Source: Octopus sinensis (taxonomy: Eukaryota). Taken from it: DNA of 64,000 bases. Made by a program: the position numbers and the translations under genes. Below, one piece after another: positions 356-63,212 of this stretch (positions are counted from its first letter, which is position 1; every line of letters starts with the position of its first letter). Under the pieces are notes generated by a model. It worked only from the letters and a program-made list of their open reading frames with translations. It did no database searches and was not told the origin of the DNA. The stretch lies in contig NC_043005.1 in the NCBI RefSeq assembly GCF_006345805.1, positions 75,206,001-75,270,000 of the forward strand. The letters run 5' to 3'.

Positions 356-388
356 AATCTACAACTGAAGCAGCAACAACAGCTACAG
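356..388 (+). CDS. Unit 1 Thr-rich linker micro-exon (STTEAATTAT), phase 1-1
   Basis: tccag|AA...ACAG|gtgtgt, 33 nt, paralogous to five other micro-exons. Confidence 0.88.
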
Positions 389-519
389 GTGTGTATTTGA
401 AATTTTCCATTATTGCAAAATAATAAATATGTTTGATTCTCATACAGAGGACACAACTGGATTATTTCTCCAAGTTCTATTATTTAGATATGTCTCTGTT
501 TATGTGTATAATTGTGAGA

Positions 520-569
<50 letters not shown>

Positions 570-3500
570 ACATGTATGCATGTGTTAAATGTAAAATAAA
601 AAACGTCACATAATCTGAGCTTAAATGATTGAATAAATAATGTTGTTTTCTTCTTCTCTAAATACAGAATCCTGGTGTGTGATGAATGATGGTTTAGCTG
701 ATGCCTCATTAATAAGAAGTTGGGACATTAAGACTTCAAGCAATCAAGAACATGTAAATGCTATCAGACCTGGTGGAAAAGGTTGGAAACCTGATGTCAG
801 TGACAAAAAACGTACTGTAACAATTTTTGTTGGAGATGCTTTAAGATATGGTGCAACAATAAGATTACCCCGTGCCAAATACGTGCAGAAGTTTGATGTG
901 ATACTCTCTGATGGACAGGTAACTTATATCCAAGTTTTAAAGACATAATTAAGCATGTGTTCTTAATCACACAGTATCACAATATTGACCAGACCATCAG
1001 ATGTTGTTATCTAACACTTGACCCACTGTGCTTCCAATTCTGGCTTGATTGCACCATTCTTTTTCCTCTTGATCCAAAGTGCTTAACTAAATCGTCTTCC
1101 CATTGTTATGGAAGCCATCCAAGTGGCCTTTTCTGATCTCTTGGATACCACTAAATTTTAATTGGCCAGAAATGTTGATGGGAAAAGTTAGATGATTCCA
1201 TCAGCCCCAGTATTTGACCAATGCTTTATTTTTTAGATCCTCAAAAGATGAACTACAAAGTTGACCTTAGTGAGATTAGAACTCAGAATTTGTACGGGAT
1301 TTTTGCAGAGTTTTGGATTTTTTTGCAATTTTCTGATAATACCGACATAGACTTGCCCAAATGCATCAATAGATTAACAATAATATATTTTTCACTGTTG
1401 TTACAATCATCTGAAATGGAACTGTCAAAGCGCAATATTCAAGCAATTTTGCTATCCAACTTCAAAAAAGGACGTAAAGCAGCTGAAACTGCTCATGATA
1501 TCAACAGAATGTTTGGTGAGGAAATGACTGTGAGTGGTCAGCTTGAAAATGGTTTAAATGATTTAGTAGTAGAGACCTGAGATTTGAAGATCATGATGCC
1601 CATCTATCATCAATGACGGTCAATTAAAGACCGTCATTGAGAAAGATCCATGTAAAACCACTTGAGAACTGGCAAAAGAACTTCAAGTTAGCCAGAAAAC
1701 TGCCTGCAACCATTTGCATGCGATCAAAATCAAAAAAGCTTGACAAATGGATACCACACATTTGAATGAAAATCAGAAGATGCAGAGATATGAAATTTGC
1801 TCATTGCTTCTTCTCCATAACCAGACCAATCCATTTCTCAATGGTATTGTAACTTGCAAAGAAAACTGGATTCTGTACAATAATAAAAAAAACGTTCTTT
1901 GCAGTGGCTGGACCAAAATGAAGCACCAAAAACCATCCCCAAACCCGAGCTCTTCAAAAAGGTTATGGTGACTGTTTGGTGGTGTACTGCTGGACTCATC
2001 CACTATGACTTCTTAAAACCCAGAAAAACCATTACTGCAGAAACATATTGCCAAAATGAACGAAAAACTGCTACTCTTCCATCCCAGATTGGTCAACAAA
2101 AGAGGGCCAAACATTCTTCATGACAGTGCTCGACCTCATGTTTCGCTAATGACACTTCAGAAGTTAAGGGAACTTGGCTACGAAGTTCTTCCCCACCCAG
2201 CTTATTCCCCAGACCTTTCTTCTATTGACTACCACTTTTTAAGCACTTTGACGGTTTCCTTTGAGAGAAGGTGTTCAAAAATCGAACCGATGATGAAAGT
2301 GCATTCAAAGAGTTTATCAGCTCTAGAACTCCAAATTTTTATGTTACTGGAATAAACAAACTTGTAACTTATTGGCAAAAATGTGTTGACTGTAATGGTA
2401 CTTACTTTGACATATAAAATTTCTGTATTGTTGAAATATATTGTGGTGAATGTCATGTTTCAAAACGTTGCTTACTTTTTACTCAGCCTGATATAGAAGT
2501 ATATTAGCATGTTTTAATATATATTCTAAAAACATGCAATATTAACTGAACTATTTTTCTTTTACAGAATACCAATTATATTCGAAACAATAATCCTGAT
2601 GCTATTATCAAAATACCTTTTGGCACCACCGTCAACAGTGTAAAATTACGATTTCACTCTGTTAAACCAAATTGCCAAATAGTTGTAACAGTATCAATTC
2701 TTGGATGTTTTGAATCCCGTAAGTGCAATTTTATTTTTAAACAGACTTTCTGATGAAGTCCTCAACTGTGCCAAGATACCTGATAAACTAGTAAGATGAG
2801 GAGTGGGGGAAGGGGAACGTATCCTCAAACCAGAGACTTGGCCTGAGTCTGTGAAACAAAATAGACTCCACTAAAGACACCCAACGTATCAGGTTTTGCT
2901 TTTAAATCAAGCAACAGGTTATGTTAACCATCCAAATAGACAATGGTAAGATCTGAACTGAAAAGTATAAAAAAGGTGGAACAAAGTAGACGATGTAACC
3001 TGACGTGGTCCCTGGCCAGCACCTGTCAAGCCATCCGACTCATGCCAGCATGGAAAATGGATATTAAATGATGATGATGATGAAGTTGATTAACAATTCA
3101 ACATTTAAATCTGCCATATCTGGCCAAACTATTCACTCTGTTTTATGTTGAAGCCAGCCAGATCCAGCCTATCACACTGACCCTGAAATATCTATCTACT
3201 ACAAACATACAATCACATTATCAAAATCTTAGATCTATCAGATAATACATGAGTAATTCAAATTATTTCGAATAAATAAGCTTTATATTTGACAGAGTAA
3301 TCTGAGAGCTAAAGGGTTGAGCATGTGCTTAAAAAATTGTTTGTTTATATTTGGTAAAAAAAATGACCTGAAACAACATTCTGTGTATTTGTCACCATGC
3401 ATGGAATCTAATTATTCTTTAATATCTTCTTTCTAGAGTCTACAACTGAAGCAGCAACAACAGCTACAGGTACGTAGTTCAGAGTAACCATATTCAGCAC

Positions 3501-6500
3501 AGTTCTGTCTTACATGAAGATAAGGAATTGGGAAAACATCATATACAGATATTTCGTTTTGGGATTTGGTTTGCAAGATTCTTTATATGAGTTCGTGTGT
3601 TGAAGCATATTCTGTTGTGTCAGAAGCATATACTGTTTTGTTGTGTCAGTAAGACTATTGAAAAGGTTGTAAGACACAATGAAAATTTTAGGAAAATAAA
3701 AATAAGAAATAGGTGGAAATTTTACTGGTGAGTGTGTTAAATTATAAGGCACAAAAAGAAAATGACTCTCCCTAGACACAACATCATATACAGATGTCAT
3801 GCAATAATAACTGAATTCCTTTAAGCCAAGGTTTCCCAATCAAGGGTGCTTGCACCTCCAAGGGGTGTGACACAGCATTTCAGGGGGTGTGAACAGGGCC
3901 GGATTTATAGGGGCGTCAAAGAAGGCAATTGCCCCAGGCACCTTTATTCTTATGTAAATTATTACTTTAAAGGGTGCAAGAACATATTAAAAGTTTTTAG
4001 GGGTGTGGGGCATAGAAAAGGTTGGGAACCACTGCTTTAAGCCATGGATGACAATGGAATTAAAAATATGTTGGTAAACATTCTTTTGCATACAATTAAA
4101 TCAATTTTATCTTACTTATAGACTTACATTCCTATAAGAATGTGATTCTACAGATAATTAGAGATTTAGCTCTAAGTATCTTCTTATAGGTAAATTCCTT
4201 TCATTACGAATACATAGATGTCATTTCCAGTTTTCTAATAATTCTCTCTGATAGTATTTTGCTTACTCATCCTACCACTCCTTTTTCACATCATCATTGT
4301 TTGGTAATAAATTGTTGTTGTAGCTGCTGTGGCTGTTTTCCTCCTCCTCCTCATCTTCCTCTGCCTACTCCCCCTCCTTCTTCATTGCTGCTGTTGTTGT
4401 TCTTCCAATCAGGACTCACGCCATTAGCCACAAAGAATAATCTCTAATTTGAGCCTACTCTAACCTACTAAAAATGTGTGTGGAAACTTGAAGATCCACC
4501 CACCACATAGACTGGTGGTTTTATGGGCGCAAAAGCTACGTTGTTATCCTCATTCCGTAAATGGTGGCTTTTAACGGGTGGAGAGCTGAACCATCCCGGG
4601 GTACAGAGGCTTCACAATCTAGACTAGGGTCTGAAAGTTTACCACACCATAGTGGGTTACTCTGCTTTGTGGCAGAAGTAGGAAGAAAGAGTGAGAGAAA
4701 GTTGTATGAAAGAGTACAACAGGGTTCACCACCTTCCCTCGCTGGAGTCTCGTGGAGCTTAGGTGTTTTTGCTCAATAAACACTCACAATGCCCAGTCTG
4801 GGAATTGAAACTGTGTTCTTATGACCGCAAGTCCGCTGCCCTAACCACTGAGCCATTGCACCTCCACAGGCTGCTGTTGTTGTTTTCTTCCTCCTCCCCT
4901 CCCCCTCCGCCTCCTCCCCCCTCCTTTTTCGCTGCTGCTGCTGTTGTTGTTGTTATTGTTCAGTCCAAAGTCAGACTTGATTAAACAGGCCTTTCATTGA
5001 GGGCATTCCAGCCATGACATCGCATCCTTTTGTTCATCCAGGATACATTGGTAAATGTATAGTTCTTGTTCTAGATACTGAGATGTAATTTCAGGAAGAT
5101 ATTTCTACTATTTTTCACAGATCAAGTGATGTGATAGGGCTGCCATTTTTGGCTTTGAATAATTAGATATTTCTCAGTAAATGCATTTGTGGAAATGTTG
5201 TCGAGTATATGTAAGTATTGATATCTATAATTACTGATTTGATTGTTTGTAACTGAAATAAAAGACACCAAGTTTTTGAAGTGTGTGTGTGTGTATTTGA
5301 GTATCTTCCTATGTACAGGTCTATTCAATACTTGTTAAAGGAATGTGCCCTCAGTATTTTGGCATTCACTGATTGAATAAATAATTAGCTGTTTTCTTCA
5401 TCTCTTCATACAGAATCCTGGTGTGTGATGAATGATGGTTTAGCTGATGCTTCATTAATAAGAGGTTGGGACATTAAGACTTCAAGCAATCAAGAACATG
5501 TAAATTCTATCAGACCTGGTGGAAAAGGCTGGAAACCTGATCTCAGTGACAAAAAACGTGTGGTAACAATTTTTGTTGGAGATGCTTTAAGATATGGTGC
5601 AACAATAAGACTGCCTCATGCCAAATATGTTGAGAAGTTTGATGTGATACTCTCTGATGGACGGGTAAATTATATCCAGATTTTTACAATATTTCCCTAC
5701 ATTTACATCAATAATATATTTACTATTAAACTTTAAATAATTTATGATAATAAATGGTATCCCCTGGTGGAGTGTTAACACATTTCTTCATAATATTTGG
5801 TAGGATTAGAAGTTTGAATTTGAAATTAAGAAGTAAGGGAGGATGTATAGATTACATATATCCAATTTTCTATTTTTATTCACACCCTTTCAGTACTACT
5901 TCTCTCTCCCAGCTGACGGGTTTTATTGTCCAAGGTATTTGGTGATCCTGTTGTTACCTGGTTCCACCTAAAAAGCATTAGTGAGTGTACTACGTAAAAA
6001 GCATTGGAGCTGGTGCCATTTAAAAAGTTCCCATGCTGGGACCGCATAAAAAGCACCCTGTACACTCTGTAAAGTGGTTGATGTTAGGAATGGCATCCAG
6101 CTGTAGAAACCATGCCAAAACAGACAATAGAACTTGATGCTGCTCCAGGTTTTGCCATACCCTGTCAAACAGTTTGACCCATATCAGCATAGACATCAAA
6201 TGTCAAGTAATAATGATGATGTTAATGTTGATTTGGTACCATGTCAGTCCTGCTCCTATTCTCTCTTTACTCTTTTACTTGTTTCAGTCATGTGACTGTG
6301 GCCATGCTGAAGCACCACATGTAGTCGAGCAAATCGACCCCAGGACTTATTCTTTGTAAGCCTAGTACTTATTCTATCGGTCTCTTTTGCTGAACCGCTA
6401 AGTTACAGGGACGTAAAACACACCTGCATCAGTTGTCAAGCAATGTTGGGATGGACAAACTCAGACACACAAACATATATGCACACATACATATATATAT

Positions 6501-9500
6501 ATATATACATATATACGACAGGCTTCTTTCAGTTTCTGTCTACCAAATCCACTCACAAGGCTTTGGTCGGCCCGAGGCTATAGTAGAAGACACTTGCCCA
6601 AGGTGCCACAAAGTGGGACTGAACCCAGAACCATGTGGTTTGTAAGCAAGTTACTTACCTTACAGTCACTCATATGCCTATGATAATCAAAAACATTTCA
6701 GTTATGATCATCTTCCCTTTTTTAAGGCATAGTATAATGTGGACTACATTAATCTATGTTTATTTCAGTTTTAAAGTTAGTGTGTAAGTAAGTGGTGAGG
6801 TGGATTCGCTTTCTATTTCTTATAGGCTGTGTGAGAATAGATCAGTAATAAGATTTTGATAAGTAAATAGGTTTCTCATTAAATAATAAATTCCAAAGAG
6901 ATTTTTTCCTTTCATTCTTACATAAAGTAATCCTTTCTACTATAGGCACAAGGCCTGAAATTTTGAGGGGAGGGAGCCAGTTGATTAGATCGACCTCAGG
7001 ACACAACTGGTACTTAATTTATCGACCCTGAAAGGATGAAAGGCAAATTCGACCTCAGCGGAATTTGAACTCAGAGGGTAGTGATAGACGAAATACTGCT
7101 AAGCATTTCATCTAACGTGCTAACGATTCTGCCTGCTCACCACCTTAATTCTTATATAAAGTAATACAAATGGAAACACACTTATATTTCATCTCTATCT
7201 CCTTTGTGCAGTACCTACGAGTATTACTTGGATAGGTCTCTTAAGTAGATTTACATATATCTCTATATATATATAAAGCTGAAGTTGTCTGTGTATGGCA
7301 GGTTTGGTAGCCTTCAACTAACACTATTTCCTCCGAGACCCTGCGGTGCAAGTTGACCAAAATTGAAAGTATGATAGAAGAAGACTTGCTCTTCCTTCCA
7401 TAGAAGAAAAAATACAAATCGGACCATGTTAACACCAAAAATTATTTACACCAAAAAGGTCCTTTGAAAATCCCTATTTTTTATGATTTTTTTTACTGCT
7501 GTGTTGCCATTTTTTGGTGTATTTCAACCAGAAAAATGTTCTCTTAAAGAGAATAACAAGCTACATAATACAAAATATTTACTTTTCAAAAGTTTCAATT
7601 CTAAAGGGTCAAAACAAATCCGAGCAACGCCGGGCGATACTGCTAGTACTATATAAAACTATCATCATCATCATCATATGTCCATTTTCCATGCTAGCAT
7701 GGGTTAGATGGTTTGAGAGGAGCTAGCAAACCAGAGGACTGCATCAAACTCCACTCTCTCTTTTGGCATGGCTTTTACAGTTGGAGGTCCTTCCTAAAAC
7801 CAGCCACATTACAGAGTGGACTGGGTGCTTTTGCAAAGCACCAGCACTGGCATGGTCTGATCAGAGATATATCCATATATTGTACAAAAGTCATAAAAGA
7901 AAAAGAAATAATTTTTTACACAAGAGATAACTAGAGAGGAAAATAAGAAAAAATGAAGCTCATTTTCATTTTTCATGAAAACCTTAATTATTTGTATGTT
8001 TTGTTATAAATTATAAAATAGGCAATGTTAACTAAGTCATATGTCTTTCTGCAGAATACCAACCATGTTCGTAACAATGAGCCTGATGCTATTATTAAGA
8101 TACCTTTTGGTACCACAGTAAACAGTGTAAAATTACAGTTTCATTCTGTGAAACCAGAGTGCCAAATAGCTGTAACAATATCAATTCTTGGATGTTTTGA
8201 ATCACGTAAGTATGATTGTACATTTCATACAAACTTATAATGCAGTATTTCTATGTGTAATAATATTTATGATAACCCATATTATCATATTATGTAGTAT
8301 CATGTTGTACATAATCATAATTTAGAAAATAATAAAATCATATGTGGTAAAACTAACAGGGTAATATACTATACAATCGTTTAAACTGGAATTTAATCAT
8401 TCTCTAATATTTTTTTTCTATAGATTCTACAACTGAAGCAATAACAACAGCTACAGGTATGTAGTTTACAATTTCCACAATGGTAATATCAGTACAGTTT
8501 GACAAGAGAATAGCATAAAAGCATTTATTTATGTCATGTGAGGTCTGGTCAAAAAGTATTGGCACTGTTACTATGGTAAGGGAGCTGAAGTACACAGAGT
8601 GAAACTGCTTGGCACGGTTTGACATTGAACTCTGTTGTACATGCACACTAAATAATAATGCTCTTGCTCGCTTCTGTTGTTTATAGCAGTGCCTGGAAGT
8701 AAAGTATGTAGAGTGTGGTTGTCTCAAAAAGACATTCGGATTTCAGCTGTGCATCCGTGTCGGTGACATAAAAAGCACTAACCGACCATGGCTGTCTGCC
8801 AGCCTCCTCTGGCCCTTGTGCCGGTGGCATGTAAAAAGCACTCACTACACGCACTGAGTGGTTGGCATTAGGCACTGCGGTCATATTTGTTTCTGCCATT
8901 TAATGGTTTGCTCCTGCTGACGCCTTCACTGTTGCCATTGGATGTCGCTAATGTTGTTCGATGAGCTGCTGCTACTACTTTGGTTGTTAGTGCTGGATAC
9001 CGCCAGTTTCATATATGAATCCCTCATAGATATATAAATGTTGATTTATATATTTACATACAAATCAATACTTAGGAGGAAAACACTTAATATTGTAATT
9101 ATGAAATAAAAGACACTTCCTAAATTGTCTCTGTAACTAATTAAAAAATTAAAGTGTGTGTATGATTACTCACTTACATATAAGTCTCTGCAGTGCAAGT
9201 TGAAAGAATTTACCTGTAGTATTTGACTTTTATCTCTTAATACAGAGTCCTGGTGTGTTATGAATGATGGTTTAGCTGATGCTTCATTAATAAGAAGTTG
9301 GGACATTAAGACTTCAAGCAATCAAGAACATGTAAATTCTATCAGACCTGGTGGAAAAGGATGGAAACCCGATCTCAGTGACAAAAAACGTATGGTAACT
9401 ATTTTTGTTGGAGATGCTTTAAGATATGGTGCTACAATAAGGTTACCCCATGCGAAATATGTGGAAAAGTTTGATGTAATACTCTCTGATGGACAGGTAA

Positions 9501-12500
9501 ATTATATCTTGATTTAGAATATTTTGTTATTTTTACACAAATTATTTAGTTATTTTTAGTACATTAATTAATTTATAAGAAATATCTAATGTTCTCAATT
9601 AATAACATGTTGTTTCTACACAATCAGATCTATTATGGAATGCATCCTAGCAATGATCATTACTTCTTTTTACTCCGAGACTAGTATAGCCTGGAATGCA
9701 TTAGTCAGTGTGGATTTGCATTTTTTTATAGAGTCATTGAAGTTGTTCTCTCTTTTATGCCAAACAAAATAAGCAGAAATGATCAGCATTAAGATTCGAT
9801 AAATAATTAGATTTTTAATTTAAAATAACTTTTGACTAGAACTCCATCTCTTTTTATCTCAGTAGTTAGCAATTTTGTTTTCTCCTTTGCGTAATACCCA
9901 GTGCTGGATTAACCCATTAAGCAAAATAAGCACGTGCTCTGGGTATCAATGATCAGGGGCACCACAGATATGAAAATGGTTTACAGAACAAAAGAAATCA
10001 CTTTAAACTTGCTAAAGTAATACTCGTAATGCCTTATCTCTACTAAGTATAGAAGCAGAAATTTTACATAAAATTGATTTTAACAATATCATTGAACACT
10101 TTGCAATTAGAAATAAAAAAGAAAACTTTTCAAATATAAATAAAATAGAAGCATACAAAAATAAACATTATTTTCCATCTTATTGTAAATTTTGTTTCAT
10201 TTTCAAAAATAAAAATTTACTTTATGTTTTATTATTGTTTACATTTTGAATATTTTTTGTTTACATTTTGAACCATTTAAATATATTTGAGGACACCAAA
10301 ACCTTTTAAGTGCTTAGGGCCTTTATGGGTCTTTATCTGGCCTTGGTAATATCTACCAGAATTACTTGGAAATTACACAAATTACTTAGTTTTATTTTAA
10401 TGCATTAATTAATTTATGCTGTCATTTAGCTCCATGTTAGTTCTGCTCCAGCAGACTGGTACGGAAAGCATTCTGGTCATAAGCATCACTCTTTTTTTTT
10501 TTTTTTCTGATATAGTGTAATTTGGACTACATTAGACAGTGTGAATTTTACTTTTGTACCAAGTAAAACAAGCCAGAACAGATCAACAATATGACTTGAT
10601 AAATACTTTGGTATTCTTTATTAATTTGATAAATGATTGCTACATTTTTAATTAAGTTACAGAATATCTTCTAACATGAGCTTCATCTTTCTTTATTCTC
10701 AAGCAATTATCATTTGTTTTGAAACACATATTTAAAATATTTTTCCTTTGCGCAATATCTACCAAAATTATCTCAAAATATCTCTTACTTAGTTTCACAT
10801 TAGTATATTGTTATATTTTAATGTAAATTTAAAAAAAATTAATCCTGTTAATTAAACTATCATTTCTTTCTACAGAATACCAAGCATATACAAAACAACA
10901 AACCTGATGCTATTATCAAAATACCTTTTGGTACCACCGTCAACAGTATAAAATTACAATTTCACTCTGTTAAACCAGAATGCCAGATAGTTGTAACAGT
11001 ATCAATTCTTGGATGTTTTGAAGCACGTAAGTGTAACTGCACTTCATAAACTTTATAATCCAAGATTTCTTTTTGATATTTATAACACATCCTCTATATA
11101 CGTTTTAATCCTGCAGAAAAAATTGACCAAGTGGTAAAATAACAAAATAACATACTGTATAACTGTTTCAATGCATAAAATTAACTTATTCTGTTAATAT
11201 CTTTTCTGCAGAATCAACAACTCCGGCAGCAACAGCTACAGGTATGAAATTTGCTATTTCCTCTACTGTGATATCAGAACGGTCCTATGTTATGTGGAGA
11301 CAAAGTATTGCATAAAAGTATAAAATTCTGTCACATGCAATAATAATTGAGTGCTTTTGTTAATTACAGGGTTAAAAATGTGTTGAAAAATATTCTTTCC
11401 AGTATGAGTTAAGCAATGTAGTTTTCATATGAGCAAATGTGATGTTACAGATGATAAGAGACTGAGTTATAAAAATTTTAATATACAGGTGCAAACATGG
11501 CTATGTGGTAAGAAGCTTGCTTCTCAATTACATGCTTTTGGGTTCAGTACCACTGCATGGTACCTTAGATGACTGTTCTACCAAAGCCTTGGTAGAACAA
11601 AGTCTGATGCAGTCCTCTGCCTGGCTAGCTCCTGTCAAACCGACCAACCCATGCCAGCATGGAAAGCAGATGTTAAACAATGATAATAATGATGATGCTG
11701 ATGATTAGCTCATTCCTTATAACACATCTGCATTGCCTCTCCAGGATCACAATGTGCCACATGTCTAATGTTGATGTGATCATGGAGTAACATGAGATGA
11801 AATGTTTTTCTCAAGAACACAATGCTCTTCCCAGTCCAGGAATCAAAATCACAATCTTGTGATCATGAATGAAACACCCTAACCACTAAGCCATGCATTC
11901 TTGCAATGATGTACATGTGTAAGTGTTTACATCTGTAAGCTTGAAAGAGTAGCAACCTTCTGTATTTTCATGATAACTAATGTAAAAAACAAAATGTGTG
12001 TGTGTGTGTACATGTCGGTATATATTTGTGTCTCAGTCTGTACAATGTGAGGTAAGAGTATTTACTACCAGTATTTAGCATTCACTGATTGCATAAATAA
12101 TGTTGTTTTCTTTGTCTTTTAATACAGAGTCTTGGTGTGTGATGAATGATGGTTTAGCAGATGCTTCATTAATAAGAAGTTGGGACATTGAGACTTCAAG
12201 CAATCAAGAACATGTAAATTCTATCAGACCTGGTGGAAAAGGATGGAAACCTGATGTCAGTGACAAAAAACGCACTGTAACAATTTTTGTTGGAGATGCT
12301 TTAAGATATGGTGCAACAATAAGATTACCCCATGCAAAATATGTGGAGAAATTTGACGTGATACTCTCTGATGGACGGGTAAATTATATCCAGATTCTGA
12401 TTATAAACTTGTTTTATTATTTTTACACCAAACATTTACTTATTATTGATGAATGTAGGCATAAGTATGGCTGTGTGGTTAAGAAACTTGTTTCCCAATC

Positions 12501-12568
12501 TCATGGTTTTGATAGTATGCCCACTCTATTGACAGATATACGAGTGCATCTTTTCCCTGACTTGTGGT

Positions 12569-12607
<39 letters not shown>

Positions 12608-15600: not shown

Positions 15601-18600
15601 GATTCTTTATTTGAGTTCGTGTGTTGAAGCATATTCTGTTGTGTCTGGGAAGAGTAATTTTCTTTTTGTGCCTTATAATGTAACACACTCACCGGTAAAA
15701 TTTTCACTTATTTCTTATTTTTATTTTCCTAAAATTTTTGTTACATCTTGTGAAAAGGTTGCAGGATGCAATGAAAATTTTAGGAAAATAAAAATAAGAA
15801 ATAAGTGGAAATTTTACCAGTGAGTATGTTACATTATAAGGCACAAAAAGAAAATTACTCTCACCAGACACAACAGAATCCTAATGTATTTTTTATAATT
15901 AAATATTATTAAGAATTGTACAACAAAAAAATTTAATATTTTGTGTATTGTAAAAGTATAAGCAATTTATTGCACACATACATTAACAATAAAATCTTAT
16001 ATGTAGATCCTTGTTGGGCCATGTAGATCCTGGTTGGGAACCACAGCTGTAGATTATGGTTCATGTGACAATGTCATGTTGCAGATAATGAGAGATGTTG
16101 GCAAATTCTGTTCATTGTGAATATCATCATCATTTAACATTCATTGTCCATGATGGTATGGGTTGAATGGCTTGACCAGAGCTGACCACATGGAGAGCTG
16201 CACCAGACTCCAGTCTGATTTCACATGGTTTCTATGGCTGGATGCCCTTCCTAATGCCAACCACTTTCCAGAATGTGCTAGGTGCTTTTGCGGGGCACCA
16301 CATGGATGCTTTTACATGGTGCTGCATGGGCATTTTTTGTGGCACCATGCAGGAGCACTTACATGCTTTTATGTGGCACTGCACAGGTGTTTTTTTATGG
16401 CACCAGACAGGTGCTTTTACATGGCACTGTCATGAGTGCTTTCCACCACTGCAGGGACTAGTCTAAACACATCTGCTGCAGAGTACAGGTCCTCTTGAAT
16501 CCAGCAAAGCCCCAGGCATCTCTGTCCTTTGTCAAACAAGTGCTAGACATCTGGGTCCTTTGTCATAGATATCACTTCTAACCTCCTAATAATCTCACTT
16601 TCTGTGATACTTTTGCTTGCTTATCTTATCACACTGTTTTGCTCTCTTACTATTTTGATATCAGTTAGATTTATTTGCCATTGTCATCATTAGCTGCAGC
16701 AGCATCATTTAGCTATCATCTCACCCCTGGTTGAGCAGACATTTTAATAAAAGGCATTCCAGTCATGACATGTCATCCTTTTGGTTATACTGGGTACAGT
16801 GGCCAATGTGAACTTCTTGTTTTAATTGGTGGTCAGTGGTTTCTTGTTACTGCCACTTCTAGCAGGTCAAGCAATGTGATAGAGACTTCCTTGATGGCTT
16901 AGATTACTAAGATACTTCTGACTAATTGTGTATGTATTGATGAGTCTATATAAGTGGTTATGTTTGTTTTAGTTTTCCATTTTTTTTTTGCTTTTTTTTG
17001 TTTTGTGTGTGTGTGTGTGTGTCTGCATCTGTGTGCCAGTCTGTGTGTCTGTGTGAGATAAAAGAACTACTTCTTATCACCATAACTAATATGGAAAATA
17101 AAGGGCATGTGTGTATATGCCTTTTTGAGTGTGTATGTGTGTATATATGTTTGTGTATGTATGTGAGGCAGAGTGTGAGAGAATATTCACTTATGTACAG
17201 GTTTGTACAATGTTTATTAATGTAGATTGGCGTTAGGAAGGACATCCAGCTGTAGAAACTTAGCCAGATCAGATTGGAGCCTGGTGCAGCCTTCTGGCTC
17301 GCCAGTCCTCAGTCAAACCGTCCAACCCATGCCAGCATGGAACATGGACGTTAAACGACAATGATGATGATGATGATGATGAATAAATAATTTTCAATAA
17401 TTGATTGAATAAATAATGTTGTTTTTTCATTTCTTAAAACAGAGTCCTGGTGTGTGATGAATGATGGTTTAGCAGATGCTTTATTAATAAGAAGTTGGGA
17501 CATTGAGACTTCAAGCAATCAAGAACATGTAAATTCCATCAGACCTGGTGGAAAAGGATGGAAACCTGATCTCAGTGACAAAAAACGTACTGTAACAATT
17601 TTTGTTGGAGATGCTTTAAGATATGGTGCAACAATAAGATTACCCCATGCAAAATATGTTGAGAAATTTGATGTGATACTCTCTGATGAGAAGGTAAATT
17701 GTCTACTAATTTATAATAATATCTATTATTTTTAATTAATTAACTTGTTTGTAATTTTTATAATGCTTATATAATGAAAATATGCCTAGCGTAAATAAAA
17801 GTAATAACAGATTGCCTTATTTTGCATATGACCTTATCATGCAATATATAGTGTGGGCCAGAGTTCATGACTAACTTATTAGTTACATTTCTTAATATGC
17901 TTATTTCGTTGTTATTCAACATCATCATCATCATCATCGTTTAACGTCTGTTTACCATGCTGGCATGGGTTGGACAGTTTGAATGGAGACTGGTAAGCCA
18001 GGAGGCCTCACCAGGTTCCAATCTAATCTGGCAATGTTTCTACAGCTGGATGCCCTTCCTGACATAAACCACTCCGAGAGTGAAGTGGGTACTTTTTACG
18101 AGCTACCAGCACAGGAGCCAGTCATGCGGCACAAGCATTGGCCACGTTCAGATGGTGCCTTTTACGTGCTACTGGCACAAGAACCAGTCGGAGTGGGGGT
18201 GGGGGTAGGGAGTGTGCTGGCATTGACCAGGTTTGGTTGGTGATTTTTATGTGCCATCAACATGAGGAGCCAGTCAGGCAGCACTTGCAATGACCCACAC
18301 ATGAATGGTGCTTATTGCGTGCCATCAGCACAAGAGCCAGTCAGGTAGCACTGGCATAATTACCTTTCCATTACAGCTAATTAACCAGTGATTGATCTCT
18401 TGCTATTCACATTATTTTCATTTCTTGTGTGTTCAACTCTTCTTATGTCCGTTTTTTCTTTCTCTTGTACCTGCTGTAGTTACCTGGAAAAGTCTATATA
18501 TAGCTGTACATTTGTATATTGGTAGATTTAATGTAAAATTTTAAAACAGACAATATTAACTTTGTTATATCTCTTTAACAGAATTCCATGAATATACCAA

Positions 18601-20957
18601 ACAATAAACCTGATGCTATTATCAAAATACCTTTTGGAACCACAGTAAACAGTGTCAAATTGCGATTTCATTCTGTTAAACCAGAATGCCAGATAGCAGT
18701 AACAGTATCAATTCTTGGATGTTTTGAATCACGTAAGTGTAATTGTATTTTCAATAACATTGCTGTATAAAACCGCAATTGTAATGGATGATATTATACA
18801 CCTTGTATAATGCAATAGTTTATTTATAAGCATTAATGTAATTTGTAAAATTAGATTTACTTCAGAGAAGTAAAAGGAATGATCCAGTCAAATTGACACT
18901 TGTAGAAAGGAAGGGTCCCTTGTTTGTTTAAAATCAGTTTCACTTATCTCACAAATTGTTAATGTTAGTCATTCTAAATTTACTTGTGGCTATAGAAACC
19001 ATATAAGAGTATAACAGATGGAATATATTTACCTTGCCTTAAAAGCTATTCAAATTATACTCTGTTACCTGGAACCACAAGGAAATTGCTTAAACAGGAA
19101 AGTTTTGGTATATATTTTAAATTGTTAAATTTAAACATGCTACAACACACTATATGCAGTTGTTTCTTTTTATTGAATTAAATTCTGCTTTTAATATCTT
19201 CACTTTAGAATCTACAACCGAAGCAGCAACAACAACTACAGGTATGTATTTGAAAATTTTCACCTTTGCAATGTACTCATTTGTTACTCATACAGTAGGT
19301 ATATATGAGTTACTTCTCTGAGTTCTATTAGTTAGATCTCTCTATGTTTAAATGTGGAGGCGCAATGGCCCAGTGGTTAGGGCAGCAGACTCGTGGTCGG
19401 AGGATCACAGTTTTGATTCTCATCTGGGCGTTGTGTGTGTTTATTAAGCGAAAACACCTAAAGCTCCATCAAGCTACAACAGGGGGTGGTGGCGACCCCT
19501 GTTGTACTCTTTCACCACAACTTTCTCTCACTCTCCCTTCCTGTTTCTTGAGTAACGCTGCGATGGACTGGCGTCCCGTCCAGCTGAGGGGAAGACATAC
19601 GCCACAGAAACCGGGAAACCAGACCCATGAGCCTGGCTAGGCTTGAAAATGGCGCATAAGAATATATGTTTAAGTGCATATATGTGTATATGAAGGAGTA
19701 TATATCTGTGTGCTCATGTATGCATGCATGTGTAAAATATAAAATTTTAAAATGTATCTTTTATAACCTGGACTTAAATAAATGAAGAAATAATCTTGTT
19801 TTTTCATTTTTCAAAACAGAGTCCTGGTGTGCGATGAATGATGGTTTAGCTGATGCTTCATTGATAAGAAGTTGGGACATTAAGACTTCAAGCAATCAAG
19901 AACATGTAAATTCTATCAGACCAGGTGGAAAAGGATGGAAACCTGATCTCAGTGACACTAAACGTACTGTGACAATTTTTGTTGGAGATGCTTTAAGATA
20001 TGGTGCAACAATAAGACTACTCCATGCAAAGTATGTTGAGAAATTTGATGTGATGCTCTCTGATGGACAGGTAAGAAGCATTTAGTTTATTTCTCTAATG
20101 ATCCTGTCTACATACTTCCCTTATTAATTTATTTTTATATGATGTGTCAAAACAAACTCACATATTTTTCATTTGAAAACACACAGTGTGTACTGATTAA
20201 ATTCATGATGGTAACTGAAGAAAGCAATAAAATATTATCTCCATGAAGACACCACTACCGCCTGCCTAACTGTGCTGGTGCCACACCAATAGCTGTGGAA
20301 AATATGCAAAGTTTTTTTGATACACCCTATAATAAGAAATGTGTAGTGCTGTTGCTGCTTTCCATCTCTATACTAGTCTTCATTCAGCAGACCTAAGATG
20401 AAATGAAGACTCTTGTTTCAGGCATAGCATTACTGTGACTGCATTAGCCAAAGTGTGGCCAACCTTTTATAAAATGTTAGAATACAATTGGAAAGGATTT
20501 AGCTGTTATTTTTAAAATGGTAGGAAATAGCATTTAATTCTAAATGTATAAAAACAAGACAAAGATATTGATGAATATTTAGGTTTTACATGAAAAATAA
20601 TTTGCAACCAAGGCACCTTCCCATTTTATTTTCATCATTTATCTCTTCTGCAAGAACACTTAATCTTTATTACTTTTGATTCTGTAAATTCTTTCATAAG
20701 TACCTGTAAATGGTTTCATATATACCTTTACATAAGTATCTCTTTTACTCTTTTACTTGTCTCAGTCATTTGACTGTGGCCATGCTGGAGCACCACCTTT
20801 ACTCGAACAAATCGACCCCGGGACTTATTCTTTATAAGCCTAGTACCTATTCTATTGGTCTCTTTTGCCAAACTGCTAAGCTACGGGGACGTAAACACAT
20901 CAGCATCGGTTTTCAAGTGATGTTGGGAGGACAAACTCAGACACACAAACACACACA

Positions 20958-21006
<49 letters not shown>

Positions 21007-21678
21007 CACACCACACACACACATATATATATATATATATACATATATATACGACAGGCTTCTTTCAGTTTCTGTCTACCAAATCCACTTACAAGGTTTT
21101 GGTTGGCCCGAAGCTAGAATAGAAGACACTTGCCCAAGGTGCCACGCAGTGGTACTGAACCTGGAACCATATGATTAGTAAGCAAGCTACTTACCACACA
21201 GCCACTCCTGCACCTTATATTGGTCGCAAAGTATATTGGTATGTCTTATTGTAAATTTTTTAAAGTTGACAATGTTGATATCTCTTTCTACAGAATACCA
21301 AACCTCTTCACAACAACAAACCTGATGCCATTATCAAGATACCTTTTGGTACCACAGTCAACAGTATAAAACTACGGTTTTACTCTGTTAAACCAGAGTG
21401 CCAATTAGTTGTAACAGTATCAATTCTTGGATGTTTTGAATTACGTAAGCATAAATGTACTTTTCAACCTTCTTAATATCAACCTGCTTGAGACCACCTT
21501 TAGTCTTATGAAACAAAATTCCCTTTTAAAGTGGTCTAAATTACAACTTTTCATCAAAACGCCATGTTTATGCAGATGCTGCACAGTTTAATAATAACAA
21601 TGTCATTCTAATGAGTTCCTTATCATTATAATAATAATAATAAGTCCAACCCATGCTAGCATGGAGAACGGACGCTAA

Positions 21679-21710
<32 letters not shown>

Positions 21711-24700
21711 TAATAATTGTGTACAGTGCTCAGGTGCACTACAACTCATCTAAAGTGTATATATAATCAGGTGTAGTTTTGGCGGATTTCGGAAAGCATG
21801 AGGGCCTTAAAGGATGCAGTGTCATGGCAGTCAACAACTGATGCAGGCAGTTTATTCCATGCTTCAGCAACTCTGAGCATGAAAAAATGTTTCCGAAAGT
21901 CATGGGAGCTGTGTTGTTTTCTTACTTTATAGGCATGTCCACGTGTGTTAGACACATGGAGATCAAAAAGGTGTTCAGTGTTGTTGTTGGTGAGGTGGTT
22001 GATAACTTTGTGGGTGTTTACCAAGTCTATCGCCAGATGCCGGAGCTTCAGTGAATCCATGCCCAGGGAAACAAGGCGCTCAGAATATGGTAGGTGTCTG
22101 ATGGAGGGTATGCGTTTGGTTGCACGTCTCTGGACAGATTCCAGGAGGTCAATGTTCTGAGCAAGATAGGGGTTCGAAACTGATGATGCGAATTCCAAGT
22201 GTGGTCGTACCATAGCTGTATACAGTTTTAAATAGATGGCTGGAGAGCAGCTAACAAAAGTCTTGCTGAGTGATGCCAAGACACCCTCGGCCTTCTTGAC
22301 AATTTTAGAGATATGCTTTGTCCAACGCAAATCACTACTGACAGTGATGCCTAGGTCACGTTCGCAAGAGGATTTCTTGATATCAGTGTTGTGGAGGGAG
22401 TATGTGGACGCAGGGTTTTTTCTCCCAAAATGCATGGTGGTACACTTGTCCACAGCCAGTTTCAGTTGCCAGTCTGTGATCCATTGCTGCATTGTGTCTA
22501 GGTCTGATTGCAGGAAAGAGTTGTAGACATCAGGATCTGTCCTCTTGATTTCAAGGTACAGCTTGATGTCGTCTGATTAATTGATACAAAAGCAATGTAC
22601 TTCAACAGAAATACAGTAACAAAAGGTATGTATATATTAACTGCTGGTAGGGACGCCATATTTCGTTTGGGAACCATGATATTAAGGATTTATAAGTCAA
22701 CACTGTGTCCTACTTTGGGTTAGCTGTACGATACAATTGCTTTTAAGTTATCTCAGCAGATTTTTTATAGAATTTAGAATCAGTATGGAAAGTTACGACA
22801 TTCCATACACAAATACATCTATGCAAACAAGATAGAAAACTAGGTAATGGGTATATATTCAATATACACCCGTTACCTTGTGTTATAAATGATAAACGTC
22901 GCCCTTTTCAAGACTAGCCAGGCTCATGGGCCTGGTTTCCCGGTTTCTGTGGCATATGTGTTCCCCACCAGCTGGATGGGAAGCCAGTCCATCGCAGCGT
23001 TACTCAAGAAACAGGAAGAGACAGCAAGAGAAAGTTGTGGTTAAAGAGTACAACAGAGGTCACCACCACCACCACCCTGCCAGAGCCTCGTAGAGCTTTT
23101 AGGTGTTTTCACTCAATAAGCACACACAACGCCCGGTTTGGGAATCGAACCACGATCCTCTGACCACGAGTCCGCTGCCCTAATCACTGGGCCATTGCGC
23201 CTCCACTGTTTCCTTGTGTTACATCACCAAATTTAGAATTTATTTAAGCAATGTGTTCATGGATGATTAATGGGTTGGATGTGGTGCTGAAGGAGGAGCA
23301 AGAGCACCTGATATATGCATACTCTTTAGTCTTTTACTTGTTTCAGTCATTTGACTGCGGCCATGCTGGAGCACCGCCTTTAGTCAAGCAAATCGACCCC
23401 GGGATTTATTCTTTCTAAGCCCAGTACTTATTCTATTGGTCTCTTTTGCCGAACCGCTAAGTGACGGGGACGTAAACACACCAGCATCGGTTGTCAAGCA
23501 ATGCTAGGGGGACAAACACAGACACACAAACACATACACACACATACATACATATATATATATACAACAGGCTTCTTTCAGTTTCCATCTACCAAATCCA
23601 CTCACAAGGCATTGGTCGGCCTGGGGCTATAGCAGAAGACACTTGCCCAAGATGCCACGCAGTGGGACTGAACCCAGAACCATGTGGTTGGTTAGCAAGC
23701 TACTTACCACACAGCCACTCCTGCATATTTATCTAGTCTACTAAATTTTTATTTCAACTTTTTTTATAGACATATTCATATACGAAACATTGTAACTTTC
23801 ACTTCTGACTCTAATTTCTATAGGAAATCTTTTGGAATAACTTAAAAGTGGTAACAAAAAGGTTAAACAAGCTTTTCAATGCAGTATTTGTGTGTGATTA
23901 CATTTATTACAACTTATATTATACACTGCTGGAGCTCTGTTGTTGATGAGGATTCAGTCATTTCATCAGCTAAATTATCTGCCCCTGAATTAATGCGTAA
24001 ATGGATGAGTATTTCACAGGCACATGTATCCTTAATGTAGAACTCAGGCAGAATCAGTAATACATGATATGTGACAAGGATGTTTCGGCTGATTTACCCT
24101 CCAGCCTTCATCAGGTGTCATGGGGAAATTTCAAACCTGGGTTCTCATTCCTAAGGTATTTTTCAATGTTATTAATATTATTATTATTATTATTATCCAG
24201 GTCACTACCTGGAATCAAACTCAAAACCTTGGGGTTAGTAGCCCGCGCTCTTAACCACGAGCATATAGTGTAGTGGTTAAGAGCGTGGGCTACTAACCCC
24301 AAGATTTCAAGTTCGATTCCAGGCAGTGACCTGAATAATAATAATAATAATAATGATGATGATGATGATGATGATGATGATAATAATAATAATATCAAAA
24401 AATACCTTTGGAATGTGAGCCCATGTTTGAGATTTTCCCAAGACATCTGATGAAGGCTGGAGGGTATATCAGCTGAAACATTGTGTTTACAATAAACAAG
24501 ATGAGGACAAATATCTGTCAAATGTAAATAATGTACATAATGTGCATAATTCTTCATCTCTTAAATATAGAATTGTAAAGTGTACGAAATAATCAATAAT
24601 ATCAAGCAGATGAAATATCAATCTTATGCATGTATAAGTGTGTGTGTGTGTGTGTGTGTGTGTACATATTTACATGTAATCATACAAACATGTTGTTTCA

Positions 24701-27700
24701 TTTTTGAAGAGCCATGCAAAATTGTTGATGGAATGTCCAGCTCTGAGTACATCCCAAGCAGCTCCATTAAAGTATCCAGCAACACAAGATATGTCAATGC
24801 ATTGAGACCCTTCAGAGAAGGCTGGAAATCTGATGAGAGAGATCACAAGCGAACTGTTACTATCAACGTTGGAAATGCATTTGTCGAGGGTGGTCATATT
24901 AAGTTGAAAAAAAGTAAATTTGTTGCAAATTTTGATGTTATTTTTGATAGAAATCACAGCATTAAGGTTAGTATTATTTTATAACTCTCTTTAACTCTTT
25001 TACTTGTTTCAGTCATTTGACTGTGGCCATGTTGGAGCACCGCCTTTAGTCGAGCAAATCAACCCTAGGACTTATTCTTTGTAAGCCTAGTACTTATTCT
25101 ATCAGTCTCTTTTGCCGAACCGCTAAGTTACAGGGACATAAACACACCAGCATTGGTTGTCAAGTGATGTTGGAGGGACAAACACAGACACACAAACACA
25201 CACACACAAATATATACATATACATATATATGATGGGCTTCTTTTCAGTTTCTGTCTACCAAATCCACTCACAAGTCTTTGGTAAACCTGAGGCTATAGT
25301 AGAAGACACTTGCCCAAGGTGCCACGCAGTTGGACTGAACCTGGAACCATGTGGTTGGTAAGCAAGCTACTTACCACACAGCCACTGAAATTTTCTCTGC
25401 ATTTCAATCTTTTCTTTTTGGTAAATGCAATAATATCCATTTTATATGCTGGTACCACATAAAAAACACTCATACAAATTCCTTGTAAAAAACACTCATG
25501 TTGGTGTCACATGAAAAACATTTGTGTCGGTGCCATGTACTCTGGCTTTAAGGGTATAGTGAAATGCCTGGCTGGAGGCCCAACTTCCTGAGTTCTTTTA
25601 CAGGACTTAGAAAAAACTGAAGGATCACTGCAATATGTGTGTGAATCTGAGAGGGAAATATACTGAATAAAACCATAATGAACTGACCCTCCTGTATTTT
25701 CTTTTACCCAACGCTAGGAACTTTTCAGGACCCTTTCCTAAAAGCACCCATGCCAGTACCACATAAAAAGCACCCAGCACACTCTGTTAAGTGGTTGGTG
25801 TTAAGAGCATCCAACCATACAAACTATACCAAAACACACAAACGAAGCTTGGGCAGTTCTCTGGCCGGTGATCTCCTGTCAAACTGCCCAACCCATGACA
25901 GCATGGAAAACAATCATTAAATGATGGTGATGTTGATGATGGTGGTGGTAGTGGTGGTGGTGGTGGTGGTGATGATGATGAAAAGTATCAAGCCAGAAAA
26001 CTCATTAGCATGTTGGATGGACAAGGTGCTTAGTGGCATTTCTTTTGGTTTTTTACATTCTGAGATGAAATTCTGCTGAGGTCAGATTTGCCTTTTATTC
26101 CTTTGAGTTGATAAAATAAAGTACCAGTCAAGTACTGGGGCTAATGTAATTAATTTGTGCCCTCCACTTAGAATTCCTGACCTTGAACCCTGCAACAGGC
26201 CAGCATCCCATTAAGGGGAGTGTTATCATCTTGAACACTTATAAACCATGGAAACTGAGTAACTGGCTCAAGAAAAATATTTAAAAAATAAATTTCTACT
26301 TAATTAGACATGCAAAAATATACTAATTAAGTATACAAAATAAAGTCAAAGATCAGATTTACAAAGTCAAATATATGGAGAAGGTGAATGCCTTCAAAAG
26401 CTAGAAGCTGACCAAATCAAAATACATAACATTAGTATGTTTTTATGGCTGGATGCCCTTCCTAACACCAATCACTCAGAGTAGACTGAGTGCTTTTTAT
26501 GTGGCATCTGCACAGGCGAGATCAGTTTTGCCGAAAAATGTGTAATTAAATGAAATATTTCATTATGTTCAAATCTGTTTAAATCAAATTTCATTTTCTT
26601 TAAAGGGAAATAAACCTGGAAAAACTATTACAATACCACGTGGAACTGATTATGAAAAGGTTACTTTGAAATTCTATCCAACAGAAAACTGTAGTGTCAT
26701 TGTGACAATTTCTATCAAAGGTTGCTTCGAAGAAAAATGTAAGTAAAGAAAATTTCATCACTTGTAAATGTCTATCAAAGGTATTACCTCATTGAAACCC
26801 CTTAGCATTTAGACCAGCTATATCTGGCTCAGATACTCCATCTGTTTTATGTTTAAACTGGTGAGATCTGGCCTCTCTCACAGCTTACCTTACAATGTTG
26901 TACAAAGAAGATGATGAAATCTGTTAGGATTTTTGACAACAAAATTTTATTTTTTCTTTACACAAAAAAAGATTGTTATGAAAAAACCAAAACATTGAAA
27001 AAGTTTTTGATTTTAATGTTCTTGGTGTAATTGTAGCAGCAGATAAAGTGTTGTTACTTGCTTCCCAGTTACTGACTTCTAATAACATTCATCCTCTGGC
27101 TATCCATTGCCTTTTTATTGACAGCTGTTGTCCATCACCTCTGTTTGGCCTTCTCCTACAGTGTCTGTCAATGCTCTCTCAGCATCATCTCAAAGCTCTC
27201 TGGCAGGTAGTCATGGTCTTGTCGAATTTATACTGGTTGATAGGCTCAGAAGGAAGTGCTCTGTGACTGGTCAGATTTTGTTGATCACATGGGCAATATT
27301 CTACTGAATCACAACATTAGTGAATTGCTGAATATTCCCACTACAATGTCACTCTAAATAATAAACAATCACATCATCAAAATCTCATAGCTATCAGATA
27401 ATGCATGACTGATTTAAAACAATGAGAATAAATAAGCATTACACTTGACAGAGTAATCTGAATGCTACAGAGTTAAGTGATTTTAGTAGAATTGTTTAAC
27501 TATGAACTGTTAAACAAGGAAAAAGATTGGATAAAAAACATTCACAGCCTATTTGATGTAGGATGACATCAAAATAGGTGAAAAATAGTTTAATTTTGTA
27601 CTAAAATATAGTTGTTTCTTTAGAAAAATATTATCAAATTTTTATTCTGTAACCAGAAGTGATGTCAAAATTTTTATATTTAGTATAAGTATTATATTTA

Positions 27701-57983: not shown

Positions 57984-58024
<41 letters not shown>

Positions 58025-58861: not shown

Positions 58862-58990
58862 AATATTCACCATTCATTCATTTATTGAACACTTCATGAA
58901 AACCTATTGATTTTTTCTTCATCTTAATAAATCATAATTTATTAAATTTTATAATTAAAAAATGAATAAAGTTTTAATTTCAAATTAACT
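58862..58990 (+). other. Candidate terminal exon (split stop T|AA) and 3' UTR with AATAAA at 58926 and 58965
   Basis: Strong pyrimidine tract + tacag|aa completes TAA after the phase-1 donor at 56207; alternatives exist. Confidence 0.35.

Positions 58991-63170: not shown

Positions 63171-63212
<42 letters not shown>

Follow-up and report, generated by a model that had tools for sequence, protein, structure and literature searches.

A candidate Octopus sinensis gene joining a tandem array of divergent discoidin-like domains to a SCO-spondin-like tail

The stretch of Octopus sinensis DNA analyzed here (64,000 nucleotides of contig NC_043005.1, positions 75,206,001 to 75,270,000 of the forward strand, hereafter the window) is AT-rich, with a GC content of 0.28-0.43, and displays eukaryotic gene structure. 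It probably contains the middle and the 3′ end of one large plus-strand cephalopod gene that encodes a modular, probably secreted protein. Taken as a whole, the locus is best read as a single gene carrying at least seven divergent discoidin-fold domains spaced by Thr-rich linkers and followed by a SCO-spondin-like tail of TSP1, TIL, VWC and CTCK modules, a reading in which we place fairly good confidence. Coordinates count from the first base of the window, and every exon described below lies on the plus strand.

A direct-repeat search of positions 1-30000 recovered six copies each of three exon families of 33, 251 and 151 nucleotides (nt), designated A, B and C, which are arranged as six near-identical three-exon units; with a diverged two-exon unit at its 3′ end, the array spans 356-26738. 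Unit 1 (356-2718) comprises exons A 356-388, B 668-918 and C 2568-2718, with AG/GT borders and a single open frame running from phase 1 to phase 1. It is followed by unit 2 (3437-8205; A 3437-3469, B 5414-5664, C 8055-8205), unit 3 (8424-11026; A 8424-8456, B 9246-9496, C 10876-11026), unit 4 (11212-13542; A 11212-11241, B 12128-12378, C 13392-13542), unit 5 (14678-18732; A 14678-14710, B 17443-17693, C 18582-18732) and unit 6 (19209-21444; A 19209-19241, B 19820-20070, C 21294-21444). Unit 7 (24710-26738), found by tblastn with one unit as the query, consists of exons B7 (24710-24966) and C7 (26606-26738), with no linker exon before it; it is about 46% identical to the other units, and the splice from C6 to B7 is in frame. 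All units have AG acceptors and GT donors, possess just one open frame, and start and end in phase 1, and all 20 array exons combine open frames with canonical splice sites. Concatenated, exons A, B and C measure 435 nt, or 432 nt in unit 4, where exon A has 30 nt and one codon fewer. An earlier model reading made from the letters alone (the sequence-only reading) had proposed at least seven domains, six of them built on a strict 33+251+151 nt unit and one diverged: the copy number was confirmed, with positions 356 and 26738 being the first base of A1 and the last base of C7, and the strict lengths hold in five of the six units, unit 4 departing from them.

The unit exons differ by about 10% among copies, and the introns vary in length and in transposon insertions. 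Pairwise comparison of units 1-6 by the Nei-Gojobori method gave ratios of nonsynonymous to synonymous divergence (dN/dS) of 0.07-0.28 at dS values of 0.19-0.38, and the array exons are thus live coding sequence, because silent sites have diverged while the protein has been conserved. Upstream of exon A1, positions 14-107 and 244-313 match the intron that precedes exon A6 (repeat families D16 and D19), and the array therefore very likely extends 5′ beyond the start of the window, in keeping with a count of at least seven. Microsatellites of the (TG)n type occur at 511-599, 5276-5338, 11993-12055, 16994-17066 and 24623-24701, 10-140 nt 5′ of exon-B acceptors; they precede five of the seven exon-B copies, including B7, and were evidently duplicated along with the unit. 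An effect of these tracts on splicing is conceivable.

Downstream of the array, the tail exons were located by open reading frame (ORF) scanning, by splice-site and phase logic, and by comparison with the orthologous locus of a second cephalopod (L001, on the 377-kb ENA contig ERZ21867824:ctg122297l, which carries two HMMER matches). Exon E1 (31027-31198, phase 1 to 2) is Cys-rich and encodes the first part of a VWC-like/SCOR-like module; it is 62% identical to L001 16108-16335. Exon E2 (33564-33610, phase 2 to 1), a 47-nt exon CKNGNITCEHKIC, is conserved in L001 16776-16835, and E1 and E2 together give a partial Pfam VWC match (1.3e-4) below the cut-off. Two TSP1 repeats follow: E3 (34925-35083), matched by Pfam TSP_1 at 1.8e-12 and conserved in L001, and E4 (37057-37224), assigned by its WSSWSSWS motif, its splice sites and frame, and its conservation in L001. 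Exon E5 (39104-39347) encodes a TIL domain (Pfam TIL 8.8e-10) that is 66% identical to L001 19291-19557. It is succeeded by E6 (40629-40675, phase 2 to 1), a second 47-nt exon, CSNSGKIICQEKPN, supported by splice sites, frame and an L001 match, and by E7 (40796-40871), placed by splice sites, frame and the motifs WSSWTSW and CSTSCG as the N-terminal half of a TSP1 repeat. Exon E8 (44139-44288, phase 2 to 2) is Cys-rich and VWC/SCOR-like with no Pfam match, E9 (46649-46816) is a TSP1 repeat (Pfam TSP_1 2.3e-8), and E10 (49187-49422) holds a TIL domain (Pfam TIL 7e-5 / 1.9e-3) and the start of a VWC domain. The middle of the latter is encoded by E11 (51079-51180; splice sites, frame and Pfam VWC), and its end, with the motif CCPKC, by the 58-nt exon E11b (52745-52802, phase 0 to 1), which restores the frame between E11 and E12; once E11b is included, the VWC domain is full-length and scores 3.1e-8 in Pfam, above the curated cut-off. 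The last exon, E12 (55917-56281), carries the CTCK domain and the stop codon, with a possible alternative donor at 56207.

The assignment of E12 follows from the cystine-knot pattern CxGxC / CxC (YCSGGCGD, HCHCCEG and CCKCTEC) and from matches to PDB sequences, namely norrin (3.2e-4), the CTCK domain of VWF (4nt5, 0.05) and sclerostin (0.47); Pfam gave no match for this CTCK domain. Over the whole tail, Pfam TSP_1 matched at 1.8e-12, 8.4e-12 and 2.3e-8. The tail thus has TSP1 repeats at E3, E4, E7 and E9, TIL domains at E5 and E10 and short Cys-rich exons at E1/E2, E6 and E8, and it ends in VWC followed by CTCK, as in SCO-spondin; the TSP1/TIL/VWC/CTCK composition predicted by the sequence-only reading was borne out by the Pfam TSP_1, TIL and VWC models and, for CTCK, by the norrin and VWF matches. 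The TSP1 exons (at 37068, 40804, 40831 and 46660) keep WSxWSxW motifs of the C-mannosylation type and CSxTCG motifs of the O-fucosylation type, which is consistent with functional, secreted TSP1 repeats. Hallmark motifs of VWD (GDPHY, GLCGN) and LDLa (DxSDE) were found in no frame of the window by a motif scan that is crude, the region 40.9-46.6 kb being partly resolved, and the spliced tail gave no Pfam VWD or C8 match.

When spliced, B7, C7 and E1 to E7 yield a stop-free frame of 433 amino acids across nine canonical exons, and E9-E12, including E11b, form a second continuous in-frame chain. Direct splicing of C7 to the TSP1 exon was rejected because it creates a TGA, and E1 and E2 were therefore sought and found. 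On one strand, in 5′ to 3′ order, L001 contains four nearly identical units, one similar unit, an intermediate unit and an orthologue of unit 7 (60% identical), followed by exons that match E1 (62%), E2, E3, E4, E5 (66%) and E6. The second cephalopod consequently has at least seven units and keeps the order unit 7, Cys-rich module, TSP1, TSP1, TIL. The open spliced frame, together with this conserved collinearity, strongly supports array and tail as parts of one gene, in agreement with the original placement of the array upstream of, and joined to, the tail.

Exon-B identity is 90-96% among window units 1-6 and 94-100% among the repeat units of L001, and only 60-69% between the species. This pattern points to concerted evolution or to independent recent expansion of the repeat units, with the terminal unit and the tail behaving as ordinary orthologues. 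The proposal that the expansion is lineage-specific accordingly calls for refinement: copies have been homogenized within each species, but the second cephalopod also has at least seven units and the domain family reaches chitons. The intermediate unit of L001 (5773-6015 and 8405-8533) is 45-52% identical to all others and has no counterpart in the window. A paralogous array, L004 (ERZ21867824:ctg119879l 242774-254726), packs about 5 units into 12 kb with a period near 1.5 kb, and similar units occur on at least four further contigs of the second cephalopod assembly (at least five in all), from which the arrays appear to form a small gene family in cephalopods.

Exon A encodes the linker S-T-T-E-A-A-T-T-A-T plus split codons, that is, 10-11 residues of which about half are Ser or Thr, and the linker pattern matches the window six times as against zero expected by chance. 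A 33-nt linker microexon also lies 3′ of exon C in the orthologous array of the second cephalopod (STTEMATTPT and similar), where none was detected before the last units of L001, and the paralogous array has two linker microexons per unit, of 21 nt (TTPAAT) and 33 nt (TPTPKPSTET). The module thus includes the Thr-rich linker as a conserved element encoded on its own, with the length of a short spacer and not of a mucin-scale stalk: the "Thr-rich stalks" first proposed are indeed Thr-rich and encoded by conserved, separate microexons, but at 10-11 residues per unit they fall far from the long Pro/Thr/Ser-rich (PTS) O-glycosylated domains of gel-forming mucins. O-glycosylation of the linkers would be plausible.

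The repeated domain itself comprises 134 residues, 128 from Cys to Cys, and contains few tryptophans. All of the F5/8-type-C landmarks named by the sequence-only reading (N-terminal C, I.TSS, GW.P..D, F.V..SDG and terminal GC) are present in the units, the two longer ones in the form GWKPD and FDVILSDG. Searches of PDB with phmmer and single units returned nothing relevant. To collect the family, a profile of the seven copies was run with HMMER against 1.84 billion representative proteins at E <= 1e-3, which gave 33 matches, none better than 1e-25; most were exon-sized ORFs of genome assemblies (exon B or C alone), and several were proteins with multiple copies of the domain separated by Thr/Pro-rich linkers. 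Named members are a 'mucin-2-like' protein of the chiton Liolophura sinensis with seven copies (XP_064614628.1) and uncharacterized proteins of Octopus bimaculoides, O. sinensis and O. vulgaris. One match, P0022, a bacterial low-complexity repeat protein, was discarded as a false positive.

Structural models were generated with AlphaFold2 and compared with PDB using Foldseek. The model based on the seven window copies was poor (predicted local distance difference test, pLDDT, of 62), and its best matches, already discoidin domains, served as a lead only. The second model, built from an alignment of 36 domain instances (A4), reached a pLDDT of 95.4 and a predicted TM-score (pTM) of 0.89, with nine β-strands forming a discoidin β-sandwich, as the earlier reading had expected of such a model. 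Foldseek returned 41 matches for it at E <= 1e-3 (best 1.3e-6, TMq 0.60-0.66), nearly all of them discoidin or CBM32 domains; the top matches were neuropilin-1/2 b1, DDR2 DS, FVIII C2, FV C2, CBM32 of the Clostridium perfringens GH89 enzyme, CASPR2, lactadherin C2 and retinoschisin. When the family hidden Markov model (HMM) was compared with all PDB sequences, 20 of the 20 matches at E <= 10 were discoidin domains, headed by the factor-V-like subunit of pseutarin C (C1; 0.0046) and including the b1 domains of neuropilin-2 and -1, and the alignment runs from the first Cys through C..GM...I.D..I..SS...R...W. On these models and profiles, the domain is most aptly viewed as a shortened and divergent offshoot of the discoidin (F5/8-type-C / CBM32) fold, lying outside the Pfam family as now modelled, and the family, to judge from its members, is mollusc-wide and previously unmodelled.

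Each unit has three cysteines, C4, C120 and C131. C4 and C131 are found without change in units 1-7 and are common to the family at large, in keeping with the end cysteines of discoidin domains, and would form the clasping disulfide. The codon of C120 lies in exon C (e.g., about position 2670), within KPNCQ, KPECQ or TENCS; this cysteine is present without exception in the window units, the orthologue and those cephalopod exon-C fragments that are close relatives, whereas the chiton protein and the octopus paralogues of greater divergence lack it. Should C4 and C131 be joined in the usual clasp, C120 would probably be left unpaired and could make a disulfide between chains or bind a metal. Residues R34, W40 and the SS(N) motif are strongly conserved among units and would be placed at the loop end of the barrel. 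Discoidin domains bind their ligands via loops at one end of the barrel, among them phosphatidylserine (FV/FVIII, lactadherin) and collagen (DDR). Further ligands include C-terminal arginine peptides (neuropilin) and sugars (discoidin I, CBM32).

Compared with known systems, the unit resembles discoidin and CBM32 domains in its predicted fold, in the cysteine at each end and, by a marginal profile alignment to factor-V-like C1 and neuropilin b1, in the stretch C..GM...I.D..I..SS followed by Arg and Trp. It differs from classical discoidin domains in being about 20 residues shorter with trimmed loops, in lacking WLQVDL, TQG and other Trp-rich motifs, in falling outside Pfam PF00754, and, in the cephalopod subfamily, in its extra third cysteine. 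Classical animal proteins carry one or two discoidin domains, as opposed to at least seven tandem copies here. Long discoidin-type arrays are better known from bacterial glycosidases bearing CBM32 modules; the C. perfringens GH89 enzyme, with six CBM32 modules of which several are among the Foldseek matches, likewise has multiple copies per chain. The closest relatives of the domain, XP_064614628.1 and the Octopus proteins LOC106867630, LOC118768321 and CAI9741633.1, belong to the same divergent family and carry it in tandem on Thr/Pro-rich linkers; they differ from the window units in having 17-30% identity, no third cysteine and, in the chiton protein, long PTS linkers, and they gave no Pfam match, hence no TSP1, TIL or CTCK tail was seen in them.

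At the level of the whole protein, SCO-spondin is similar in that its TSP1 repeats alternate with TIL and short Cys-rich modules before VWC and CTCK, with a discoidin-type domain 5′ of the TSP1 region. The O. sinensis gene differs in its far fewer TSP1 repeats and in having, where SCO-spondin has one or two canonical domains, a divergent discoidin-like array joined by Thr-rich linkers, while the N-terminal block of SCO-spondin (EMI, VWD-C8-TIL and LDLa) has no equivalent in the window and is either upstream of it or absent from the gene. Lophotrochozoan mucin-like proteins and insect hemolectin/hemocytin are, as is predicted here, large secreted polymers with central discoidin domains, small PTS stretches and a terminal cystine knot (PMC4948705). 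In hemolectin, however, VWD-C8-TIL units stand on both sides of two canonical F5_F8 domains in a 3 + 2 arrangement (PMC4948705), whereas in the window no VWD signature follows the array and the domains are non-canonical and number at least seven. The CysD domain of gel-forming mucins offers a further likeness, as a small globular domain that repeatedly interrupts O-glycosylated linkers in a polymer ending in CTCK; its fold and sequence are unrelated, and the linkers here have just 10-11 residues. Based on its predicted modules, the tail is SCO-spondin-like: it is not hemolectin- or hemocytin-like, because neither the crude motif scan nor Pfam found a VWD after the array, and not that of a gel-forming mucin, because long PTS regions are missing. 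Hemocytin-type architecture was rejected on the same ground, and of the initial label "SCO-spondin/hemocytin-type" only the first half, which describes the tail, survives. Thus the kind of protein was known, and what appears to be new is the cryptic discoidin-like family, its tandem array of at least seven units, the microexon-encoded linkers and their place in a SCO-spondin-like protein.

Several observations weigh against this picture of one gene with a discoidin-fold array. The gene model derives from genomic sequence alone, and the window starts too far downstream to include the 5′ end, where the signal peptide and any VWD, LDLa or EMI domains would be encoded. The model also needs two small exons, one on each side of E8, that a search filtered by splice site, phase and Cys did not recover: one to complete the TSP1 repeat of E7 (starting in phase 2, within 40872-44138), and one in phase 2 to 1 to link E8 to E9 (within 44289-46648). 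Support for the discoidin assignment comes from a predicted structure and from profile E-values that are marginal (0.0046 at best). The TM-scores are moderate (about 0.63, with a root-mean-square deviation of 3.4-5.8 Å), owing to a domain length some 20 residues below that of classical discoidin domains. Neither the window units nor any of the 36 family members (0/36) matched Pfam F5_F8_type_C (PF00754) at E <= 10, and nine full-length homologues gave no match to it at E <= 1; the original "discoidin-like" label therefore stands for the fold and not for the Pfam family. A word-indexed search of 5.8 billion proteins with a unit, the family alignment and the junction-spanning 433-residue sequence revealed no annotated orthologue, returning zero matches or one unrelated TSP1 protein, but this search is incomplete and missed known relatives, such as P0001, which is present in the database and is 68% identical with long shared words. 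Five unit peptide strings were sought in supplements to two skin-mucus proteome studies of O. vulgaris and none (0/5) was present, a weak negative, since those data may come from a different species and their search database probably lacks the gene. Finally, given that discoidin ligands may be lipids, collagen, peptides or sugars, calling the domains lectins is one reasonable guess among several.

Two alternatives concern the gene itself. Array and tail could be two adjacent genes, a discoidin-repeat protein ending near 26.7 kb and a separate TSP1/TIL/VWC/CTCK protein after it: the 4.3 kb separating C7 from E1 leave room for a terminator and a promoter, a phase match at a single junction arises by chance one time in three, and the word-indexed, incomplete search found no annotated protein covering both parts. 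Nevertheless, C7 runs without an in-frame stop up to a strong GTAAGT donor, E1 opens at a strong acceptor and lacks a Met or any start resembling a signal peptide, splicing leaves a frame open over 433 amino acids, the order, strand and exon set are conserved in the second cephalopod, and all modules share a phase-1 exon-shuffling pattern, all of which makes two genes quite unlikely. Still more improbable is a decaying exon array, either a pseudogene or an assembly duplication. Assembly errors can indeed produce tandem near-identical copies, but the open frames and canonical splice sites in 20 of 20 array exons, the dN/dS of 0.07-0.28 with dS up to 0.38, the roughly 10% exon difference among copies whose introns differ in length and transposon content, and a similar array in the independent assembly of another species all speak against it; pseudogene and artefact were rejected on the dN/dS values and the independent assembly.

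The remaining alternatives accept a single gene with its array and tail and differ over what the protein is. The domains may be structural or cross-linking modules that interrupt O-glycosylated linkers in the manner of CysD, forming non-covalent or disulfide cross-links, and not ligand-binding lectins. This idea is compatible with the single-gene, discoidin-fold interpretation and not exclusive of it; we regard it as possible, although the less favored view of the domains. The chiton mucin-2-like protein and its relatives alternate the domain with PTS stretches as CysD does, the odd cysteine count (three per cephalopod unit) leaves one cysteine probably unpaired and able to bond between chains, the loops are shorter than in classical discoidin domains and the W-rich motifs are missing. 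Against this idea, strong conservation of R34, W40 and SS(N) fits a binding site, self-association being also possible, and purifying selection on all units and best structural matches to ligand-binding domains point the same way. As to the gene's identity, SCO-spondin carries F5/8-type-C domains according to UniProt annotation. A true cephalopod SCO-spondin orthologue with a Reissner-fibre-type neural secretion, as opposed to a mucus, adhesive or clotting paralogue, would account for the alternation of TSP1 and TIL, the short Cys-rich SCOR-like exons and the VWC and CTCK end, which match the C-terminus of SCO-spondin (as described in PMC7333891). We consider this orthology rather unlikely, as vertebrate SCO-spondin has more than 20 TSP1 repeats and the 30-kb tail just about five, the motif scan found no LDLa in the window, and unit arrays on at least five contigs of the second cephalopod assembly indicate a multigene family.

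The window also carries interspersed repeats. In the intron between units 6 and 7, a 241-aa ORF on the minus strand (21767-22492) resembles by eye the C-terminal part of ORF2 of a jockey/CR1-like retrotransposon lacking long terminal repeats (non-LTR); it has no Pfam match and is probably a transposon fragment. An abundant interspersed repeat resembling short interspersed nuclear elements (SINE-like), about 250-400 nt long with a TA/CA-rich head and a conserved GGGACTGAACCCGGAACCATGTGGTT core, is present in both orientations, at 6266-6676, 13157-13332, 20744-21212, 23325-23725 and 24991-25392 (direct-repeat families D3/D5/D7/D10) and, as ORF footprints, at about 30546-30803(-), 35794-36078, 41668-41883(-), 57855-58067(-), 62701-62969 and 63107-63292(-); it gave no tRNA or RNA family with ARAGORN or Rfam. 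A second, intronic interspersed repeat (...CCAACCCATGCCAGCATGGAAA...GTTAAA...) ends in a (GAT)n tract and is likewise found in both orientations (families D8/D9/D12/D15), with copies at 3000-3095, 6139-6234, 11609-11704, 17287-17382, 21644-21706 and 25853-25948 and inverted copies at 7661-7722, 16120-16181 and 17927-17988. On either strand 3′ of the stop codon, positions 56282-64000 contain no convincing coding exons, just interspersed repeats and microsatellites, and are probably 3′ untranslated region and intergenic DNA. Scans of the window for tRNAs (ARAGORN) and with Rfam returned nothing.

The CTCK domains of VWF, gel-forming mucins and norrin form disulfide-linked tail-to-tail dimers. 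By analogy with these proteins, the CTCK domain encoded by E12 may join two chains tail to tail by disulfides, while the Thr-rich linkers, if O-glycosylated, would keep the domains apart and each discoidin-like domain would bind a ligand, be it a glycan, a matrix protein or a lipid, via the loops at one end of its β-barrel. Such a dimer would display at least 14 binding sites and might serve as a high-avidity cross-linker in a mucus, an adhesive or a fibre-like secretion; the exon structure, the purifying selection, the predicted fold, the tail domains and the in-frame join with its conservation in a second species come from the data, and the secretion, dimerization, glycosylation, ligand binding and tissue of the protein are inferences. 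According to Lang et al. 2016 (PMC4948705), mucin-like proteins of lophotrochozoans characteristically contain F5_F8 domains, and among invertebrates, mucin-like proteins most closely resemble SCO-spondins. SCO-spondin-like proteins have also been reported from Octopus vulgaris skin mucus (PMC11431876) and from limpet pedal mucus (PMC7333891). This published context fits a mucus or adhesive role without proving it, and a literature search combining discoidin, mucin and cephalopod found no paper. More speculatively, and with low confidence, the domain could define a mollusc-wide "mucin-associated discoidin-like" family that plays a CysD-like part in secreted polymers, with C120 providing covalent inter-chain cross-links in the cephalopod branch and with valency and spacing tuned by alternative splicing of the symmetric linker microexons and 1-1-phase units and by rapid, concerted copy-number change.

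These findings overturn nothing, and they are useful for annotation and for the biology of mollusc mucus and adhesives. They bring out an animal discoidin-fold family that is invisible to Pfam and whose members carry labels such as 'uncharacterized' or 'mucin-2-like' in the annotation of octopus and chiton genomes; the 36-sequence alignment could seed a new model for this family. The locus likewise illustrates neatly how a three-exon module may evolve in concert, next to a terminal unit and a tail that stay orthologous. Mucus, glues, clots and egg coats all depend on large polymers that repeat one binding domain many times, and a dimer with at least 14 discoidin-like sites on short glycosylated spacers would be a concrete candidate for such a cross-linker.

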